64,000 nucleotides of DNA from NCBI GenBank assembly GCA_946965045.2, contig OX337229.1, positions 4,030,001 to 4,094,000 of the forward strand, read 5' to 3'. Source of the stretch: Epithemia pelagica (Eukaryota; Protista; Bacillariophyta). Positions 7,718 to 64,000 of the stretch are shown piece by piece; the stretch's first letter is position 1, and the number at the start of each line of letters is the position of its first letter. The position numbers were made by a program, and so were the translations under genes. A model generated the notes under the pieces. The model saw only the letters and a list, made by a program, of their open reading frames with translations. It did no database searches and was not told the origin of the DNA.

Positions 7718-8451
7718 GGAAGACTCTTTTTTTCAGCAACAACTGACGGCCTTGCAACGTGCAGCATGTCTCTGCTTGCAGTCATATTCTTGTATTTTCT
7801 ATACCAAACACAAAAAAGCTGTAATGGCATTCTTAGTATTAACTTCGGTATGCTGTGATGAATGAAAAAGTGCAAAGGGACCCCTCATCTTTGCACGGCT
7901 GTTTTGTCCGTAGAACCTCTCAAGTTTGTTTTCACCGCGGCATCACTTTTAACTGATGCATCATCCTTATTGCCTTCCTCATCCTCTAATCTTGTTGTTG
8001 AACAGTCTTGGACTCTGTCTGTTCCGTGGAATCGGAACCAGTGGTTTTCGTTTTGTCCATGGCAGTGTTAGCCTCTGCTTGTTTAGTTCTGTCCTCTTCA
8101 TTTTAGCATCGTCTTTGACTCTTCTTGTTTATTTGTGTCATCTGTTGTAGTCTCTTTCGTTTCGTCTTCGGCAGTCTTTGCCTCAACCACATTTGTCGTG
8201 TCTTCAGTTGGTGGTGTTGTTGTGGCTATTGCGGGGGGCTCGTGGAAGGTGCTCCCATGCAACCGGCGGGTCTGTAGGTTGCTGTAAGGGATGGGACATA
8301 CGTTGGACGTCTTGGAAGGAGGGGCGAAGGTTCGTGGATGATAATATGACGACGACCAAGTTTGCTCCGTAGTGGGTGTGTGGTGGGTTTTTGTTGTTTG
8401 TGTCAACAATGGGAAATCGCCAATTTTTGAAGGTCGCGCCTGGGGGTGAGT

Positions 8452-8530
8452 AACAGTTTGCACACCAAAAGCACGACACACATGCGACCCGACCACTCAA
8501 CAGTTTGCACACCAAAAGCACGACACACAT
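8452..8530 (+). repeat. 47-bp tandem duplication at the LINE target; the second unit is split by the LINE
   Basis: aacagtttgcacaccaaaagcacgacacacatgcgacccgaccactc at 8452-8498. The second unit runs 8499-8530 and is completed by 16286-16300. Confidence 0.85.
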
Positions 8531-8635
8531 AATTTCAAGATCAGGCGAAAGTGAAAGGACCCCTTCGTGCATTGGTTTTTGAAATTTCAGTAGCTTCAGT
8601 ACTGAACTCTACGTGCGAAAGCACCTCTGTCCACG

Positions 8636-10354
8636 GTGACAATGACGGAACCTTCTACGACGACGGCAACCTCTACTGACAACATGGAGGACAATGCAAG
8701 CACCAACACTCAGACTATCGACAATCAGGCGATTCCTTATGAAGGCGAAGAGAAGGAATACACCCTCAAGTTTCTTTTCCGCCCCAAGGCAAGTAAAAAC
8801 ACCAACGTCGCCAAGAACCACTACGCTATTCTCCAAGCAATGCTTCAAGTGTTTCCAGAGATCATCCTGTACAACAACCACGGTGAAGTCCTCAATCCCA
8901 AGAAAATCAAGACCATCCTGAACTACAACGACTACTTACGCAACTTTAACTTGCACTTTTCCAAGGGCAATGCTGACAAGAACCGTTCTCCGATATACAT
9001 TGTCGTTCACCGCATCCGATCTCGCATCCCTGTGAGCCATATCAGGCGTCACAACACTATCTTTCATATCCTCTCACAAGGCCGTGCCAAAATGACAGTA
9101 CATGGTTGGAGCGAAGATGAAATTCGCATCTCTAACATTGGTTTCTTTGTGGGCTTTGATCCTAGCAATATCTTACACGAAGACATGGAAGAATGGGTCA
9201 GGAAACAGATTTTCAAAAATACCGGTACCTCCCTGAGGAAAATACCTAAGTTCCGTTGTGGTTTCTCTTCTCCATTCCTCGTGGATGAAGATGATAATCG
9301 CTTCTCAACCAAGACCTTCGATCTCCAATGCCGCCAACAAGACGCTAGAGAAATGATCGAGCTACTCTCCACGACGTTCAATGAGAATCCACCCTTCATG
9401 TTCCATGGAGTTCGACACTCGAATCCTGACACATACAGACGCGCCATTCTCCGACAAAACTCTTACCTCAAGAAATGCCAAATCGTTCCTATTGAAGGCC
9501 TCTCGTCAGATATGCTCTGGTACGGAATGCGCTCGCGCATTACTAGCATCGCAGGAGTTCGCAGAGTCACTAAACATAGAAACACAGCTGAAAAAGGCAG
9601 GTGGAGCATTCACACAGACATGCTCCACTTCAGTCAAGTCGTTACAGAGATAAAAGAAAATTTGACCAAATGGAGTGACGAAGTTTGTGAAGCAAACACA
9701 ATCCAGACCGGCTACACATTTCTTCCCAGGTTGGCTTTCAAGAAAAACAAATTTGATGAGGACGATGATGATGACGAATCACGGGCTAGTTCCTTTCAAA
9801 CATATATGTCTGCTTGCAGTTCCCTATATAACGCAGATGATGACGACTGCATGAACCCCCCATCTGATTCGGCACCAGTGGCTCAAGCCTGGGTTTGCCC
9901 TATCCAAATTAAAACTGTCGTGGCTGGACAGAAGACAGAAGAGGCCCAGAGCCAAATTACACAAGACGACTACGACAAGCTCAAACTTGAAAACGATAAA
10001 CTCACCCGCGAAATTCGCGAGCTGAAGGATCAGTTTAAGCAATTCATTGAAGAGCAAAAGAAGGCTCGCAATCACACCGTCTCCGTACAAGAGCAAATGG
10101 ATTTCAAAGCTCTTCTCAAGGCTGCAATGGCGGAAATACGTGAAGAACTTACTTTGACTTCAACAAACACCACCCATCCAAACAATAATAGCGAAGGAAA
10201 TCGGGCAGATGCACAGGAGCACGCCAATAACGATTCAAACGAAGGAGCTGCGTCTACACTTGACGCTAGCATGGCACAGGCAAATTTGTCCTTTCAGGCG
10301 GACGAATCCCTGATGCAATCAAGCATGTTTAGCCATGACTCGGTCACAGGATAG
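8636..10354 (+). CDS. LINE ORF1 protein (572 aa) with a C-terminal coiled-coil-like segment
   Basis: Long ORF at the 5' end of the element; YDKLKLENDKLTREIRELKDQF heptads; overlaps ORF2 by 20 nt. Confidence 0.85.
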   Translation: MTMTEPSTTTATSTDNMEDNASTNTQTIDNQAIPYEGEEKEYTLKFLFRPKASKNTNVAKNHYAILQAMLQVFPEIILYNNHGEVLNPKKIKTILNYNDYLRNFNLHFSKGNADKNRSPIYIVVHRIRSRIPVSHIRRHNTIFHILSQGRAKMTVHGWSEDEIRISNIGFFVGFDPSNILHEDMEEWVRKQIFKNTGTSLRKIPKFRCGFSSPFLVDEDDNRFSTKTFDLQCRQQDAREMIELLSTTFNENPPFMFHGVRHSNPDTYRRAILRQNSYLKKCQIVPIEGLSSDMLWYGMRSRITSIAGVRRVTKHRNTAEKGRWSIHTDMLHFSQVVTEIKENLTKWSDEVCEANTIQTGYTFLPRLAFKKNKFDEDDDDDESRASSFQTYMSACSSLYNADDDDCMNPPSDSAPVAQAWVCPIQIKTVVAGQKTEEAQSQITQDDYDKLKLENDKLTREIRELKDQFKQFIEEQKKARNHTVSVQEQMDFKALLKAAMAEIREELTLTSTNTTHPNNNSEGNRADAQEHANNDSNEGAASTLDASMAQANLSFQADESLMQSSMFSHDSVTG

Positions 10355-13300
10355 AGCGAACTATGTAAGCGATTACATAGAATATCCTCTTAACGACTAC
10401 ATGCATGACTTTTCTCCTAACAACATTGACAATGATACACTAGACGAAACAACAGACAATACAAGTGAAGACCTACTACAAGACCTATCTGATCAAACAC
10501 AACAACAACGCAACTACGCATCGAACCCCTACATTGGAACCGAACCACAAGAAGGAAAAGAAGACTACATATATAGAGTGTATGGAGCAAACGTCAACGG
10601 CTTTAACATTGGAAAAGATGGAGCTGAATTCTCCGAATTTTGTGAAGAAATGAGACAACTAGAAGTAGACACGTGGTGCAACTTCGAATTGAATCTAGAT
10701 ACCTTGAAGCCCCGAGTCCGTGATATCATGCAAAACACTATTTGGAAGCATTTTGACCACTCGAAAATGAAAACAAGCACATCTTCAATATCTCTGAATC
10801 GCCGAAGTAACTTTAAACCAGGAGGAACATTAATCGCTACACAGGGACACACGTGTGGACGAGTAATTTACCAAGGCAATGACAAACTGGGAAGATGGAG
10901 TTATCAAATTCTCTCCTGTAAAAACAGACGAACTCTCACTATTGTCTCGGCTTATCAAGTTTGTCAACAACAAATCGTCGTCAACAACCGGGTCAAATCT
11001 AGTACCGCCTCTGCGCAGCAGACAAGCCTACTACGACAACAGGGACGTCAAGAAAATCCGAGGCAAGCATTCGTGAAAGACCTGCAACAGTTTCTACAGC
11101 AGCGACTTGATGACGACTCGGAATTGCTAGTCTTGGGCGACTTCAATGAACCATTGAACGGTGACATGGATGGAATGACTCAGCTCTGTTCAAATTTACA
11201 ACTCTGCGATCTGATGACCCAAGTGACTGGCACCGAAACAGATTTTGGGACACATGTAAGAGGCCGGCAACGCATTGATTATGCGTTGTGTACAGAATTG
11301 GTGGCACAAAGTGCAATACGCGGATGCTATGAACCCTTTGGACAAAGAGGCAAGGGAAACCATCGCAATATGTTACTAGACTTCGATACAAGGATCTTGT
11401 TTGGAAATCTGACTCAGGCTCTTGGTCCGATCTCCACGCGAGAGTTCTCTGCTAAAGACCGCTCAGCGGTACGGATTTATCTTTTGAACAAACACAAATA
11501 TCTACAAGATCACAATTTCGCGCATCGACTGGAAGAACTTGAGACGAATTGGTCGCCAGAAACGATAGAACAACTTGATGCTGATTTTCAACGCGCCGGC
11601 AAAGTAGCAGCTAACAAGTGTATCAAGAAGCCAAGACACATCGCTTATGTACAAGAACTCGCTGACCTCCGTCGCAAAAAGAACATTTTACTCAAATTGA
11701 TATCTGAACACAAACTGAAACGTTCCTTTGCATCGGGGATTGCTCATGAGACGCGCTTTGGGTGCTCTTACCGCTTACCTACAACTCTTGAAGACTGTGT
11801 TGAACAATGTAAGGAAACCCAAAAGAAAATCCAAGACATGACAAAAGAAGCCGCTACGAAACGGCGTAAGGAACAACAGACGGCCTTAGAAACTGCTCAA
11901 GCGCAAGGTGACAAGCGTACTGTCAAGGCAATCAAACATAGACTAGCTGCCGAACGAACAAAGGCAATGTTTAACAAGATCAGACAGTACCGTGGTACTC
12001 AAAAGACGGGAATTACAAGGCTGGAAGTACCTGCTGATGCCACAAACATGGATTATGAACGATGCACCGAATGGATAACCATCGATACTCCGGCAGAAAT
12101 TGAAAGCCGGTTGCTACAAAGAAACCAAAAGCACTTTGGTCAAGCTCATGGAACGTTTCCGACACAACAACCTTTCTCCGAGTGGGTGGACTGGGGAGCC
12201 TCTTCCCATACCGCTGAGCTGATTCTCGAGGGACAATGGGAGTCTAATGAACTCGATGACTTACAGCAATGCTTACTGCAACACATGGAACGCCGTACTG
12301 AGCTCGACATGATCAAGGATACGATTTCTATAGAGGAATGGTGTGGAAAGATACAAGCGTGGCCAGAAACTACAACGACATCACCGAGCGGATTTCATCT
12401 CACTCATAGCAAGGCACTTCTTGCAACACACGACCTTGATCCTGAAACAGAGGAGGCACAAGAACTTGAACGGAAACGCAACGACCTAATCGAGTGGCAA
12501 GTCAAATTACTCAACGGTGCTATCAAGCATCAGTATTCTCTGGAAAGATGGCAGAAGATAGTGAACGTCATGATTTTAAAAGAACCGGCAAACATCAAGA
12601 TACACCGACTGAGAGTAATACATCTCTATGAGCAAGACTACAATCTGCTCTTGGCGGTTAAATGGCGAAAACTAATTCAACACGGAGCGAAACATCAACT
12701 ACTACATGATTCTCAATTTGGAGCAGTTCCTGGTCGTGACGCAGTTCTGCCCACACTTATCGAAGAGTTTCAGTATGAGATTAGTCGCGCGAGCAAGAGG
12801 CCTATGATTCACCTCGATTACGACGCAACGGCATGTTATGACCGAATCATCATGTCTTTTGGTGGCTTAGCATCACGGAGCTTCGGGCAACATCGGTCAG
12901 TGGTCTTCATTAACGCAAAGACATTAGAAGAAGCACGGTACTATCTTAAAACGCAATAAGGCGTTTCTGATCGTTACTACAAGCACTGCACAATCTATCC
13001 GATCTACGGATCAGGACAAGGCGCTGGAAACTCCCCAGCAATCTGGTGCGTCGTTAGTTCGATTCTCTTTGAAACATACGATGAGAAGGCACACGGGGCA
13101 ACGTTTTATTCTCCTGATCGCAAAACCACGGCTCAAGTTCTGATGATTGGCTTCGTCGACGACACAAGCGGGAGCGTGAATGACTTTCTCCTCCCAGCTG
13201 CGGCTCCTCCAGAACACTATACTCAACTAGCAACAGATGATGCTCAGCGGTGGAACGATCTCCTATCCTTATCTGGTGGATCTCTCAATCAGCAAAAATG

Positions 13301-16163
13301 CTCTTATCATTTTCTTTATTACGACTTCACTATTGACGGCCTTCCATTTCTCAAGAGTGGTCGATTCGGTCCTACTATTACCATCACTTCCAACCCAACG
13401 ACTGTTAGTCCTATTCGACAACTATCCGCGTACGATAGTCATAAAACGTTGGGTGTTCACAAGGCACCGTCGTCTACAGATAATTCGCAATTCCAGGCAT
13501 TGAGAAAGAAAAACCAAGAGCATGCTCGAGTGGTCGCCAGTAGTCCCCTCTCCCGGACAGACGTCTGGGCCTATTATGCCATTTATCTGCCCAGCATGAC
13601 TTACGTGTTTCCTTCTTCATCACTGTCGGTCGAACACTGTGACCAACTGCAGAAAGAGTTTAAAAAGGTTTTTCTACCGAAATATGGGTATAATCGTCAC
13701 ACTCCAAACGCTGTGGTCTTTGGAAACTCGGATTTTGGGGGTCTTGGGCTCCGTACTTTGTCGATTGAACGGGGTATTGCACAGATATATGGCTTGTTGG
13801 CATGTTTACGTTCCAATGGAGTTGCTTCCCAGTTGGCCACAATTATGTTGGGATGGGGCCAGATGTTGGCCGGTACAAGTACACCGATTCTTATGGATCC
13901 ATCGATTACTCTTCCCCATCTTGATCCTATGGTATGGATTCCACCGCTGCGAGAATCATTGCACCAGTTGGGGTGCACTATAGAAGTTCATAGCGCCTTT
14001 GTTCCTAAACTTCAACGGGATTCGGATATGTTTGTAATGGATCACGCCATTCAGGTGTTCCAGCGACCTACGGACTTGCAACTTATCAATGCTTGTCGAC
14101 TGTATCTTGGGATTACTTTGCTTAGCGACATGGTGACACCAGAAGGACGCCAAATTTGTCAATTTGCACTCCAAGGCTATCACTCTACTCAAAGTCAACC
14201 AAAACTTCTTTTCCCCTATCAACAGCGTCCTGGAAACAAGGCCTGGCTGCTCTGGAAAAAGTTTCTACGTACATTTCTTCGGCAAGGCACTGCATGCGAT
14301 CTTCAAGTACCATTGGGTAAATGGCACGTCACAGGCGCGTCATTACACCGAGAATGGAATACGTACTTATTGCAGGATCAGCGTTTACTCCTCGTGCGGT
14401 CTCCCTCAACTACACGGTTCCGTGTTCATGTTCCGACCTTGGACAATCGCGGTTTCGTCGCCACTAATCAAGAGTACACTATTCTTCCCTCGTGCGCTCT
14501 CCCAGCTTTTACGATGCAACGCAACAACGTTCACATTTTAGCTCGACTGGCCGGGGCAGTCCCTCCCGATCCTCCCTGTCCCTCACCAACCACGTTTGCA
14601 CAATTGGTTTCGACGCTTGAACCATGGGAACACGATCTGCTTTGCGGTACAAAATTTTTATGCCCCATTGAGACACTTCGACATACATTTGAGTCCCTCC
14701 TATCCTCGAATGTCTTTCCTCTTCATCTGTGTGGCGATGGATCTGTTGCCGATTTCACAGGTTCTTTTGGTGGATCATGCGCTGATGATACTGGAACTCG
14801 GCTGATTCATCTGAAGGGGCCTGCACCAGGCTATCGTACCACTTCTTACAGAGCCGAAAGTTATGCCTTTCTTGCATGGCTTCGCCTGGTCTTTCGTTTA
14901 TGCGAATTCTTCGGGTGTCCACTACCCTCCAACTTGGTATTCTATTCCGACTCCAAAAGTATGCTGGACACAATACAACAACGGTTAGAATGGACTGTCG
15001 ATTATCCGTATACAACAATGAGTCCGGATTGGGATTTGCATCAAGCGATTACATCTACCATACGTCGATTTTCAGACATACCACATTGCTGTCACGTGAA
15101 AGGACATCAGGATCGATATCATGCCTTCGATGAACTCTCTCTTCCTGCACAATTGAATGTCGAAGCGGATGAGCTTGCCTCTCAGTACACATTTCCACCG
15201 TCTCTTAATCCTACCAAGGTTCCACTCGTCGAAGGTACTGTGGCCTTGCTACACGGTCCGAAAGGCACAATCACAGCGAATTATCGAGCGGTGCTTCGTC
15301 GCTGCCACAATGAACCCTTAATTCAAGAGCACATCTGCCGCAAGCAGGGGTGGAATCATGAGACTTGGCAACTGGTTGATTGGACGTCTCACTGTAGCGC
15401 TGTACGTGCCAATTATACGCGACGCCACTTTTTGTCTAAGTATCTCCATAACTGGCTCCCACTTGGCGACCTGATCTCCCGCTACGCAGACCACTACGTT
15501 GAGACATGTGCATCTTGTAATGCCAATATCTGCGAAGACCGCGACCATTTTCTCCGATGCCCTGCACGCCGTTCGTGGATTGGCCCTTTATTCGACGACC
15601 TTAACACATTCTGGCAGGAACAGTCGGTTGATGCTTCGTTGATTGACTTGCTCACTACTGCTGTTCGTTCGTGGCTTGACTCTACACCAATTTCCTTTGA
15701 TAACTTGACACCACCCCTGGCCCGTCTTGTGGCTCAACAGACTTTAATTGGCTGGGACCAGCTTTTTCTTGGACGGTTTGCTCTTACTTGGTCCTCCTTG
15801 CAGGATCTTCATCTCTCCTCCCTCGGGATCTCTTCCTCCTTTATATCTGGCCGGGTCTTTGTCACCGGCACCATCAAACTTATATTCTCCCACACGTTCT
15901 CTCTTTGGCTACGACGAAATGAAGATGTTCACGGCCGTGATTCTGCCACTCGAGAAGCTGCTGCCTGTGTACTTGCTCAACGAGAAATTCGTTGTCTGTA
16001 TGCTCATCGCTTATCTGTCCCCACTGAGATTCAACAAGTCTTCTACTCTACTCCAGACGAACATTTCCAACTTCATACAACTTCATCCTCTCTCCAGGCT
16101 TGGCTTGCCACCTGGGCACCAGTCATTCTCCGTTCCACTACCCTTCCACATTCCAATGGTTAG
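10335..16163 (+). pseudogene. LINE ORF2 (APE endonuclease, RT, RNase H, C-terminal CCHC-like) with one in-frame TAA at 12957-12959
   Basis: APE motifs GANVNG, LGDFNE, IDYAL. RT motifs DYDATACYDR, GSGQGAGNSP, GFVDD. RNase H motifs CGDGS, RAESYA, YSDSKS, HVKGHQD, NVEADELA. Also CASC..DRDHFLRC. ORFs 10335-12959 and 13143-16163 share a frame. Confidence 0.93.
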
Positions 16164-16600
16164 CTAACATCATTATCTTGTTAGTCCTCGCCCTTCTGGG
16201 GCCGGGCGCGTCGGTCGACTTATTCCGCGTGGATAGCGTTAAAATAGACTATCACTTTTTTTTTTTCCAAAAGCACGACACACATGCGACCCGACCACTC
16301 ACCCCTACTTGGGGGTACTCGAGCGTTGTCCACTTGTATCGAAGTGTTCGCCTTTGTTCGAGCAAGAGAGACGCAGACATACGATTGAGAAGATAGATTC
16401 GCATTGCTACTTGCCACAGACGAGGGGCTTTTGTCGTTCAGACGACGAGGTAGAAGAAGACCCTCTTGTTCGTGAACAGAACAACACGGCACTTTGGTCG
16501 AGTTCGATCACCACAGAGCGTTTCGCAATTCGTCGCAATCCTACACGCTGCCACCATTCTTCGCTCCACCACCCACAACAACAAGTCGGTCGTTGCTGCC

Positions 16601-61060: not shown

Positions 61061-61346
61061 TGACTTAAGGAAAGCATATGGATTGGTCGTTCGTGGTTTG
61101 AAATGGGTGGCTGGTTTGCAATGGGATGGACAGGTAAGAGCACCAAAGCCACAGACGTGAGAGGTGGATCGGTGCGCTTGTGTGCTCTCGGCAAGAACAA
61201 GGAAACTCAAGTTTGCGCTACTGAAAGGTCATCTGCTATCTCTAGACCTATTTGCCAGCGGATCATTCACAATCTGTCAACCATTGCAACCGAAAGAGAA
61301 TGATAGTGTTTGTGCCGTCGCGATTGTGGATGATGAGGTCGGAGCG

Positions 61347-64000
61347 AAAAAAAAAAAAAAGGTACAATCTATTTTAACGCTGCCGCGCGGACCCGCTAGG
61401 GTGCCGTCGACCGACGCGCCCGGCCTAGAAAACTAGGCGAGGACTAACAGTACTTGGGGGGGGGGGGGGGGGGGGTTAAGAAATCACGGGAAAGAGGCAG
61501 ACCGAAGTATAACAGGTCGCCATGTGTTGAGCCAATTGCGAAGTGCGAGTGAGGTAGTGTCGATAGAGAAATGGAGTTCCGGTGTGTCGTAGAACAGTAT
61601 AACATCAAAAGCCTGGACTTGGTCTTTGAGGGCATAAAGGCGAGAACTTCACGTTTTGCTTGGGCATACTCGGCAGTCTCGATAGTTTCGGGAGAATCGC
61701 CATGAAGATCCTGATTACGGCGGAGCCAGAGGTTGAACACGTGAAGCCAGATAATATTGATAGTAGCAGTGATGATACGAAAGCCGGAGAAGAATGGGGA
61801 AGAGAGGGAAACGCGTTGTAAGTAAGCGTCTTGGAGATGCGCCCATTGAGAAGAGAAACGGCCAAGAAACAATTGCTCATGTCCGATGGTAAGTTGTGAG
61901 AGGATAACCCGTTGATACGCATGAGGAACAGGGGGAAAGGATGGGTTGGTGTTGTTGAGAAACGAACGGAGAAATGCCAAAAGCAGAGTGCGAAGAATAG
62001 GATCAAACTCCAAGTCATGCCATTTCGACCGAAGATCTTCAGCGAGAGAATCGAACCAGTACCGTTTGGGACATTGAAGAAATGAGACCGAGTCTCAAGA
62101 GTGTTTGAGCAAAGAGGACAAGTATCGTCGTAATAAGCAGCATAGCGGGATTTCAAATACCCCAGAGGAAGCCAATCGTGAAGGAATTTAATCAAAAAAT
62201 GGCGACGAGGGAAGTTGGAATTCAAAGCACGACCATGAGCAGTCCAATCAACGGAATTGAAAACATCCTCGGACCAATCATATTTACTGCAATGGTATTG
62301 TCGGAGAGTCTCATAGCTGGCGAGCCTTCTCAAGATAGCCCGGTAATTAGAGTTAATCGAACCGTCCGCGCTGTGGAGCAACGCGTGACTTCCCGCAGTA
62401 ATCGGTGCGAGACACGAAGAGACACGTAAAGGATAAGAGTACTCGGCAGCCGCGTGATCCGCGTCGACATTGAGCTGGGCTGGTAGTGGTAACGTAGAAT
62501 AGGCTTGCGCTTGGTCTTGATGGCCCTTAATATGACAAATGTGGGGAAGTTCTGCAAACTGTCTAAGTGACCGGGAGATTGCTTGTTGTAGATCCCAATC
62601 GGCAGTCATGGTAGAATACGGGAACTCGACGAGCCATTCTAGCCGTTTTTGAATCGTCTTGACCAAACTCTCGGAGTCTGTAAACATCTGTAGAGAAGTA
62701 GGAAGAGGACAACTTAAGAACAGACACGCTTGAATCAGATACCGCAGGATTGCTAAGAACGCGTAGCTTTCCGCGCGGAATGAGGACGTTTTGTAACCAG
62801 GCGCAGGACCATGAAGTCGAAATAGTCGTTGACCAGTGTCAGTGGAACATACGCAGCCAAACGATCCGACAAAGGAACCAGCCGAACCATCCCTGCTAAC
62901 CAACAAGGCAGAAGGCGATTGGAGAAACGTAGCAAGTGCTTCAGTCGAGCACAGAGCGGTGCATTGTGTGCAAAGAGAGCGTTCCCAAGAAGTTAACTGG
63001 GCCATATGTTCACTTAAGGTACTTGGTGGTGGTGTAATCGGTCGTGGTAGCACATAATGGCTAGTGGACAGAATTTTTGCTGGACCTGTCGAAAGCGTCT
63101 GAGCTGGACAAGCCGCGGATGGGACAGAGTGATGAAGAGTCGTAGTGGGCCAGAATGCCATACCATGGTAGTGGTATTCGAGCCATTGACCATTCGGAGC
63201 CGAAACAAATAGACGAGAAGACGGACGGTCGAGATAAGAAAGCCAATTCCAAAAAGTGGAGGATCCACCAAAGTACCATTTCCCAAGCGGTTGAGCTAAG
63301 CGTCTGTATTGGGTAGAACTTAGGAGACTGTTCAAGAATTTACGCCACTTTGTCCACGATTGGGGACCGGGTCTTCGTTGATAGGGAATAAGACCGCGAT
63401 GTTGTGTCAGAATATCCATACGGCCGTCATACGCGGCGCGAGTGATCTTGGATCCTTCGGGGGTAGAAATGTCACTGACAAACGTTGCTCCAAGGTAGAG
63501 ACAACAAGCGTTAATCACTTTCAAATCTGTCGAAGATGTTGTATGGGCAAGAGCCAAATCCATCAAGAATGCGTCTTGTTCTCTCTGGCGGTTGGGGACG
63601 AAGGTTTGCTCGAGTTCAATCCGACAATCAACTTGAGAAAGGAAGGAGCGCATCTGGGGGAGCCATTACATTGGGTCCATATGCGGTAGATTGGTGTGAA
63701 CATCTTCTAGAACAGGAATTCCAGTGCCAGCGAGAAATTGACCCCAGGAAACCATAATTTGAGCAAGTTGATGTTGTACACCTTCGGAACGAATGCAAGC
63801 CAGAAAGTGGTAAACTTGAGCTATGCCACGTTCGACGGATAAAGTACGAAGACCGATACCTCCAAGTTCAGACGGTCCATAGACCACAGCATTAGGCATG
63901 CTTCTGTTGAACCCATACTTGGGCAAGAAAGCTTTCTTGAATTGGCGCTGAAGAGCAGTGCAAAATGAGTCTGAAAGGGTTGACGAAGGAAAAGGGTAGC
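61347..64000 (-). mobile_element. 3' part of a second, degenerate APE-RT-RNase H LINE related to 8531-16266
   Basis: Frameshifted pieces (63666-63926, 61605-63653, 61444-62013) homologous to the first LINE's ORF2 (PKYGFNR..P.AVVYG, RAESYAFLA, HIKGHQD, CPLC..ETRSHF). Same 3' motif and a T14 tail (A run at 61347-61360 on +). Confidence 0.92.

Follow-up and report, generated by a model that had tools for sequence, protein, structure and literature searches.

A family of diatom LINEs with heritable oligo(T) tails at their sense-strand 3' ends

Descriptions of LINE tails usually speak of poly(A) or of microsatellite-like repeats. The window analyzed here, a stretch of 64,000 nucleotides of diatom DNA, carries two copies of a LINE family whose sense strand ends in a run of T, and this raises the question of whether the run belongs to the element and, if so, how it is made and transmitted. 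A preliminary description had assigned the run to the element and had proposed that an oligo(U)-ended RNA is reverse transcribed without base pairing to the target; the U end was thought to come from Pol III-like or hairpin-plus-U-tract termination, from 3' processing, or from uridylation by a terminal uridylyl transferase (TUTase). The layout of the first copy is as follows.

8452-8530, plus strand: 5' flank and junction of copy 1, containing a 35-nt direct repeat and a 19-nt copy of the target site duplication (TSD)
8531-16266, plus strand: LINE copy 1, full length, 7,736 nt, with the 5' end AATTTCAAGATCAGGCGAAAGTG
8636-10354, plus strand: ORF1, 572 aa
10335-16163, plus strand: ORF2 frame, 1949 aa with one in-frame TAA; APE, RT, RNase H and a Cys/His tail
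16164-16248, plus strand: 3' UTR with a covarying multi-helix structure; its 3' edge is the box GCGTTAAAATAGA at 16236-16248
16249-16255, plus strand: spacer CTATCAC, subfamily-specific
16256-16266, plus strand: oligo(T) tail, T11, followed by CCAAAAGCACG
16267-16285 (19 nt) or 16267-16301 (35 nt), plus strand: right TSD copy

The 3' end reported earlier for this copy, in which CTATCAC is followed by T11 and the TSD, is confirmed by the sequence (16249-16266) and by the repeat match. The 5' end AATTTCAAGATCAGGCGAAAGTG is common to other full-length copies, as seen by comparison with the 5' ends of L036, L042 and L004. ORF2 is broken by the single in-frame TAA; this stop codon, at 12957-12959, interrupts the RT at a point flanked by YDATACYDRI on one side and FVDD on the other. 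A Pfam scan of ORF1 matched no family. The repeat finder reports a 19-nt TSD adjoining the element (8512-8530 = 16267-16285) and a longer exact match of 35 nt (8465-8499 = 16267-16301); there are two alternative TSD lengths because 8499-8530 repeats 8452-8483. Both left TSD copies sit after ...GCACA with no T run, so that what the preliminary description had stated for one left copy holds for both. The doubled segment at the 5' junction (8452-8483 = 8499-8530) is a 32-nt target stretch that spans the nick site, and it represents either target sequence copied during 5' joining or a pre-existing 47-nt target tandem.

The second copy belongs to a different subfamily and is encoded on the minus strand.

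61361-64000, continuing past the window end, minus strand: LINE copy 2, about 8.2 kb in the genome
61605-63653, minus strand: C-terminal part of ORF2
61368-61380, minus strand: box GCGTTAAAATAGA
61361-61367, minus strand: spacer TTGTACC
61347-61360, minus strand: oligo(T) tail, T14, followed by CGCTCC
61334-61346, minus strand: right TSD copy, 13 nt, CGCTCCGACCTCA

Here too the sequence bears out the end given earlier, TTGTACC followed by T14, and the left TSD copy (locus L050) is found 8,142 nt upstream of the box, beyond the window end. The 3' UTR of this copy also contains a C20 run (61456-61475, minus strand) at a position where sister copies read ACCCCAA(A)G, which is a homopolymer expansion within the UTR.

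We examined the encoded proteins for evidence of family membership. In an alignment of 14 homologues the non-LTR RT motifs YDATACYDRI, GxGQGSGNSP, FVDD and HKTLGV are invariant or nearly so, and the domain order is APE, RT, RNase H and Cys/His region. Precomputed PF00078 matches are present on several homologues and PF03372 matches on many. Our own scans of four ORF2 sequences or fragments gave no match to Pfam RVT_1 (E<=0.01 for the window copies, E<=0.1 for L040 and L034); the ORF2 scans gave weak PF03372 (Exo_endo_phos) matches that stay under Pfam's own cutoff (E 3e-5 to 7e-3) and a weak RNase_H match in the intact copy L040. When the family profile was compared with the PDB, weak matches to the L1 endonuclease variant 2v0r and to exonuclease III were obtained; no RT match was found in the PDB sequence searches, and Pfam and PDB together gave no RT clade. 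A word search returned 332 relatives; those with a species name all come from diatoms (Epithemia clementina at 56% identity, Fragilaria crotonensis at 39%), and many of the remainder are on metagenome contigs of about 8 kb. ORF1 and ORF2 are both intact in several genomic copies, including L034 (T32), L040 (T16) and L045 (T9). Based on its RT motifs, APE, variable TSDs, 5' truncation and lack of LTRs, the family is a diatom APE-RT-RNase H non-LTR retrotransposon (LINE). The label 'CRE-Ambal' is used in one paper (PMC11572971), and a literature search on Ambal found the name listed only, with no description of the tails of Ambal elements.

In order to determine whether the T run belongs to the insert or to the target, we examined the TSDs in fifty fetched loci. 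Eleven copies (L003, L004, L011, L030, L033, L036, L040, L042, L045, L049 and L050) have TSDs of 11-35 nt that start directly past the T run, and two others, L035 and L041, have repeats of 16 and 12 nt that are offset by 1 and 3 nt, respectively. T precedes the left TSD copy in only 3 of the 11 loci, where it is 1-2 nt long, about as expected by chance. Since the left TSD copies lack preceding T runs, the T run must belong to the insert, and insertion requires no base pairing between tail and target; on both points the preliminary description was correct. The box and the T tail are also kept in 5'-truncated copies of 73 nt (L032), 117 nt (L030), 453 nt (L003), 606 nt (L011) and 2,242 nt (L033). 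The T run therefore sits at the end where target-primed reverse transcription (TPRT) starts.

Three insertions from different subfamilies (L032, L037 and G000:C5:959715, one of them 73 nt) lie directly against a single shared position within another repeat, CACCCCCACGG.GCGAGGGTCCAAAATTGG... A diverged inverted copy of the repeat that flanks L032 and L037 is located in the window at 8360-8450 (minus strand), 14 nt from the copy 1 TSD, with no T run beside it. This repeat may be a preferred target, or it may be a second element that inserts beside LINE tails.

The tail was then surveyed across the 60.5-Mb assembly, in which the window corresponds to G000:C2:4030001-4094000. A search with the 3' UTR gave 37 matches, and the box GCGTTAAAATAGAY has 105 genomic matches compared to none for its reversed control, far beyond chance; 77 of the 105 are followed by Y plus T6 at a fixed register. 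We inspected the 21 nt past the box in all 105 copies, using the pattern-search output and counting by hand. A pure T run of at least 6 is present in 97 copies, and the remaining 8 are decayed or runless. Within these 21 nt, none of the 105 copies has an A tail and none has a mixed A/U tail; the preliminary description had named a majority of poly(A) ends among genomic copies as an outcome that would speak against it. Tail length ranges from T6 to T34 and is mostly 8-9, with 7 to 34 as the range within the fetched loci, and fewer than 6 T are almost never seen in intact copies. One copy (G000:C16:2863971) has T5 only, followed by at least 10 G.

Tail length varies among near-identical copies. 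Pairs that are 99-99.6% identical over 900 nt carry T13 and T7, T11 and T9, or T9 and T8; L011 (T17) and L014 (T8) show 98.9% identity over 611 nt. There is no correlation between tail length and copy age, measured as similarity to the nearest relative (Spearman -0.24, p 0.21).

The region upstream of the tail is structured. An alignment of 21 distinct 3' UTRs, which includes those of Epithemia and of an environmental contig, supports five helices with 24 pairs, in which 97% of the alignment cells are paired compared to 34-41% in slid controls. Compensatory changes are present at 8 of these pairs, and the covariation score is 0.244 versus 0.112 for shuffled alignments, with none of 500 shuffles as high. 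Within the box, GACU pairs with an upstream AGUC; AAAAU is unpaired, as are the spacer and the tail. Folded as a single sequence, the copy 1 3' UTR does no better than its shuffles (z -0.29), and the claim of a 3' structure therefore rests on the alignment. No Rfam family matched the 3' UTR; the sole match, suhB, is at chance level (E 0.44).

Next to this structure, the nature of the tail in relatives is informative. In Epithemia the same 3' module is followed by T9, in an environmental JGI contig by T24, and the Fragilaria 3' end reads ACGTAAAATAGA...T15. A protein-alignment scan of metagenomes provided 80 loci. A box of the type (A/T)AA(A/T)TAGA is present downstream of ORF2 in most of those with a readable 3' end, and 4-9 nt past it the relatives carry a lineage-specific simple repeat, which can be T(n), (TTTTG)n, (TTTG)n, (TTTTA)n, (ATTGT)n, (TTA)n, (TA)n, (TCTA)n, (TTGCTA)n or (TTTA)n. 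Related metagenome contigs have the repeat in common and diverge directly after it; these tail ends come mostly from single copies or from small groups with differing flanks, and the labels were assigned by eye. In a sister lineage with 41% RT identity (L054-L060, TARA and other marine metagenome contigs) the end is ...GAAATAAAGACATTTAA plus C2-C6, with six different 3' flanks; TSDs of this oligo(C) lineage are unusable, as metagenome contigs join flanks from different copies. Thus, the arrangement is clade-wide: a covarying 3' structure and a AAAATAGA-type box, then a lineage-specific simple repeat.

Tail type clusters on an RT tree of 89 sequences, where it requires 20 changes compared to 30.9 when shuffled, with a value as low in none of 200 shuffles. 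T tails account for at least 5-7 changes and are found in one major clade only, where they are interspersed among tails of the TTTTG and TTTG types; TCTA, TA, TTA and TTGCTA tails occur in the other major clade. The tail is thus heritable and lineage-specific. The same genome also encodes a more distant APE-RT LINE with the box AAAAATAGA and the 3' end ...TTAAAAAATAGA-AGTTACT-(TA)8 (L141:1495-1530, G000:C10:1780274). A second copy, 98% identical to L141, ends in (TA)3 just 3' of a 2,297-aa ORF2 match (G000:C13:2622402), and the 3' UTR of this relative has 9 genomic matches. The fact that (TA)n-tailed and T-tailed relatives share one genome indicates that tail identity follows the element and not the host.

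LINEs of the stringent type, with a 3' stem-loop and with repeat tails on which slippage takes place, are established (PMC3747384, PMC4176376), and binding and retrotransposition assays on LINE 3' tail RNA exist (PMC4176376). The diatom LINE has the features of this type, namely a covarying 3' structure and a terminal repeat that is heritable in its unit and variable in its number. It resembles eel UnaL2, with (TGTAA)n, and zebrafish ZfL2-1 and ZfL2-2 (L2 clade) in having a covarying 3' structure followed by a variable-number repeat (PMC3747384, PMC4176376), in lacking poly(A), and in inheriting the tail with the element. It departs from these known stringent LINEs in three respects: the repeat unit is a single base, T; a clade-wide AAAATAGA box lies between structure and tail; and the APE-RT-RNase H enzyme is so divergent that Pfam RVT_1 misses the scanned ORF2 copies. 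Binding and slippage are conjectural for the diatom element. The Drosophila I factor, as cited in PMC3747384, likewise combines APE, RT and RNase H domains with a T/A-rich simple-repeat tail, (TAA)n, and not poly(A); its unit has 3 nt compared to 1 nt in the diatom LINE, and the likeness is one of features.

Similar to L1-type (relaxed) LINEs, the diatom elements have a variable-length homopolymer at the end where TPRT starts, TSDs and 5' truncation. Unlike in L1-type LINEs, the tail is T and not A, does not come from polyadenylation and has no complementary run in the target, and recognition is probably by the specific 3' structure. T runs are also known at the ends of Pol III-transcribed SINEs, for example plant Au-type SINEs, which are short transcripts in which the T run is the terminator; the position of the run at the sense-strand 3' end is the same, but the diatom LINE is a 7.7-kb protein-coding element rich in internal T4+ runs. 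Our search of the searchable literature, outside of which Repbase Reports lies, found no description of T-tailed LINEs.

Judged by its relatives, the T tail is a one-letter form of the short-repeat tails of LINEs and not a sign of an exotic RNA-tailing pathway. The premise of the preliminary description, that LINEs end in poly(A) or in short tandem repeats, in fact already covers this case, since a T run is a tandem repeat with a 1-nt unit. We consider it likely that the LINE is of the stringent type and that its tail is a mononucleotide repeat, templated and heritable, the length of which changes by slippage. Under this model, the element RNA would consist, toward its 3' end, of a conserved base-paired UTR, a AAAAUAGA-type box, a short spacer and a terminal simple repeat, here with a single U as the unit. 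The ORF2 protein would bind to the folded module at the RNA 3' end and nick target DNA with little regard to sequence, and cDNA synthesis could then begin within the terminal repeat without target pairing. The length of the repeat would be set afresh with every insertion, through slippage or re-alignment, as the variation from T6 to T34 suggests, and post-insertion replication slippage could contribute as well. The T run would be copied from the element and inherited with it, in the manner of the I factor (TAA)n or UnaL2 (TGTAA)n, and not added by the host.

Another reading is an RNA that ends in unadenylated oligo(U) or another U-rich repeat, generated either by box-directed 3' processing or by telomerase-like reiterative copying of a very short template near the box. 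The tail would in that case be made anew at each insertion, with the unit set by the enzyme-RNA pair; the box is AAUAAA-like in some lineages. We regard this origin as rather unlikely. Logan and JGI public contigs break at the repeat edge (L144 ends within the T run) and are therefore uninformative on transcript ends. With respect to the earlier proposal that an oligo(U)-ended RNA is reverse transcribed, the T run lies where reverse transcription begins, in agreement with it, and the sources suggested for the U end are unsupported. If such an RNA end were real, the diatom clade would be a natural system in which TPRT starts independently of both poly(A) and base pairing.

Template-free synthesis could in principle give rise to a homopolymer but not to a multi-base repeat, and two further explanations make use of this. 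In the first, untemplated dA is put on the bottom strand at the nick, by the RT or by a repair polymerase, and only then is an RNA ending at the spacer engaged, so that the top strand reads T. Other LINE enzymes are known to add untemplated nucleotides at TPRT junctions, such addition is expected to give a homopolymer, and the diatom tails vary widely in length with no relation to the target. However, the multi-base repeats that follow the same box in sister lineages are necessarily templated, intact copies almost never have fewer than 6 T, and the RNA would have to be processed precisely after a spacer that varies between subfamilies; we thus find this explanation quite unlikely. In the second, host TUTases add oligo(U) after transcription and the RT copies that tail. 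LINE-1 mRNA uridylation is known in human cells, and a homopolymer of variable length is consistent with it, but tail identity is inherited by lineage, including (TTTTG)n, (TA)n, (TTGCTA)n and oligo(C), and the host enzyme is disfavored because it is unable to make the multi-base or oligo(C) tails of the sister lineages. The (TA)n-tailed relative in the same genome is exposed to the same host enzymes, and none of the box copies has the mixed A/U tail. The uridylation source suggested in the preliminary description is for these reasons improbable. The multi-base and C tails of sister lineages and the (TA)n relative in the same genome count against both explanations; for the T lineages taken on their own, each keeps a small probability.

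Termination of transcription at a hairpin and U tract, either Pol III-like or intrinsic-terminator-like, would yield an RNA that ends in a few U. T runs act as Pol III terminators, and a GC-rich structured region does precede the T run. However, 20 nt of unpaired box and spacer separate the helices from it, and the non-T tails of sister lineages would not act as terminators. Pol III terminators are not avoided inside the element: intact copies have 29-34 sense-strand T4+ runs compared to 24-38 A4+ runs, and 5-8 T5+ runs, within 7.7 kb and two ORFs. The absence of internal sense-strand T4+ terminators that marks Pol III retroposons is accordingly not observed here, and such abundant runs imply that Pol III would stop early. 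This source of the U end, also put forward earlier, is therefore very improbable. Finally, that the T run is target DNA at T-rich insertion sites, or the poly(A) of an antisense element read on the wrong strand, has practically no probability: the presence of a homopolymer is all that speaks for it, the left TSD copies are without T runs, the diverged paralogue in the window of the repeat flanking L032 and L037 has neither a LINE nor a T run beside it, and the layout of the ORFs, the position of the 5' ends and truncation from the 5' side agree in putting the run at the sense-strand 3' end.

The T-tailed LINE belongs to a large, apparently active diatom clade in which one 3' recognition module has been combined with a tail unit that switched many times (T, TTTTG, TTTG, TTA, TA, TCTA, TTGCTA and C). 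This series is natural material on the choice of the RT start point and on the origin of tail repeats. In addition, annotation tools that seek poly(A) would put T-tailed elements on the wrong strand or shorten them.

Two minor observations concern individual genomic copies. L004 (G000:C13:927227-930326) is a 1.4-kb element with the family 5' end AATTTTACGATCAGGCAAAAGTGA, the 3' module, T15 and a 17-nt TSD, and it is an internally deleted and probably non-autonomous derivative. In three copies (G000:C3:2911211, C7:2602173 and C10:2155857) the sequence AGC(T/C)TCTA directly follows a T6-T7 tail, and this shared flank suggests either that one site in another repeat was hit several times or that a segment was duplicated.
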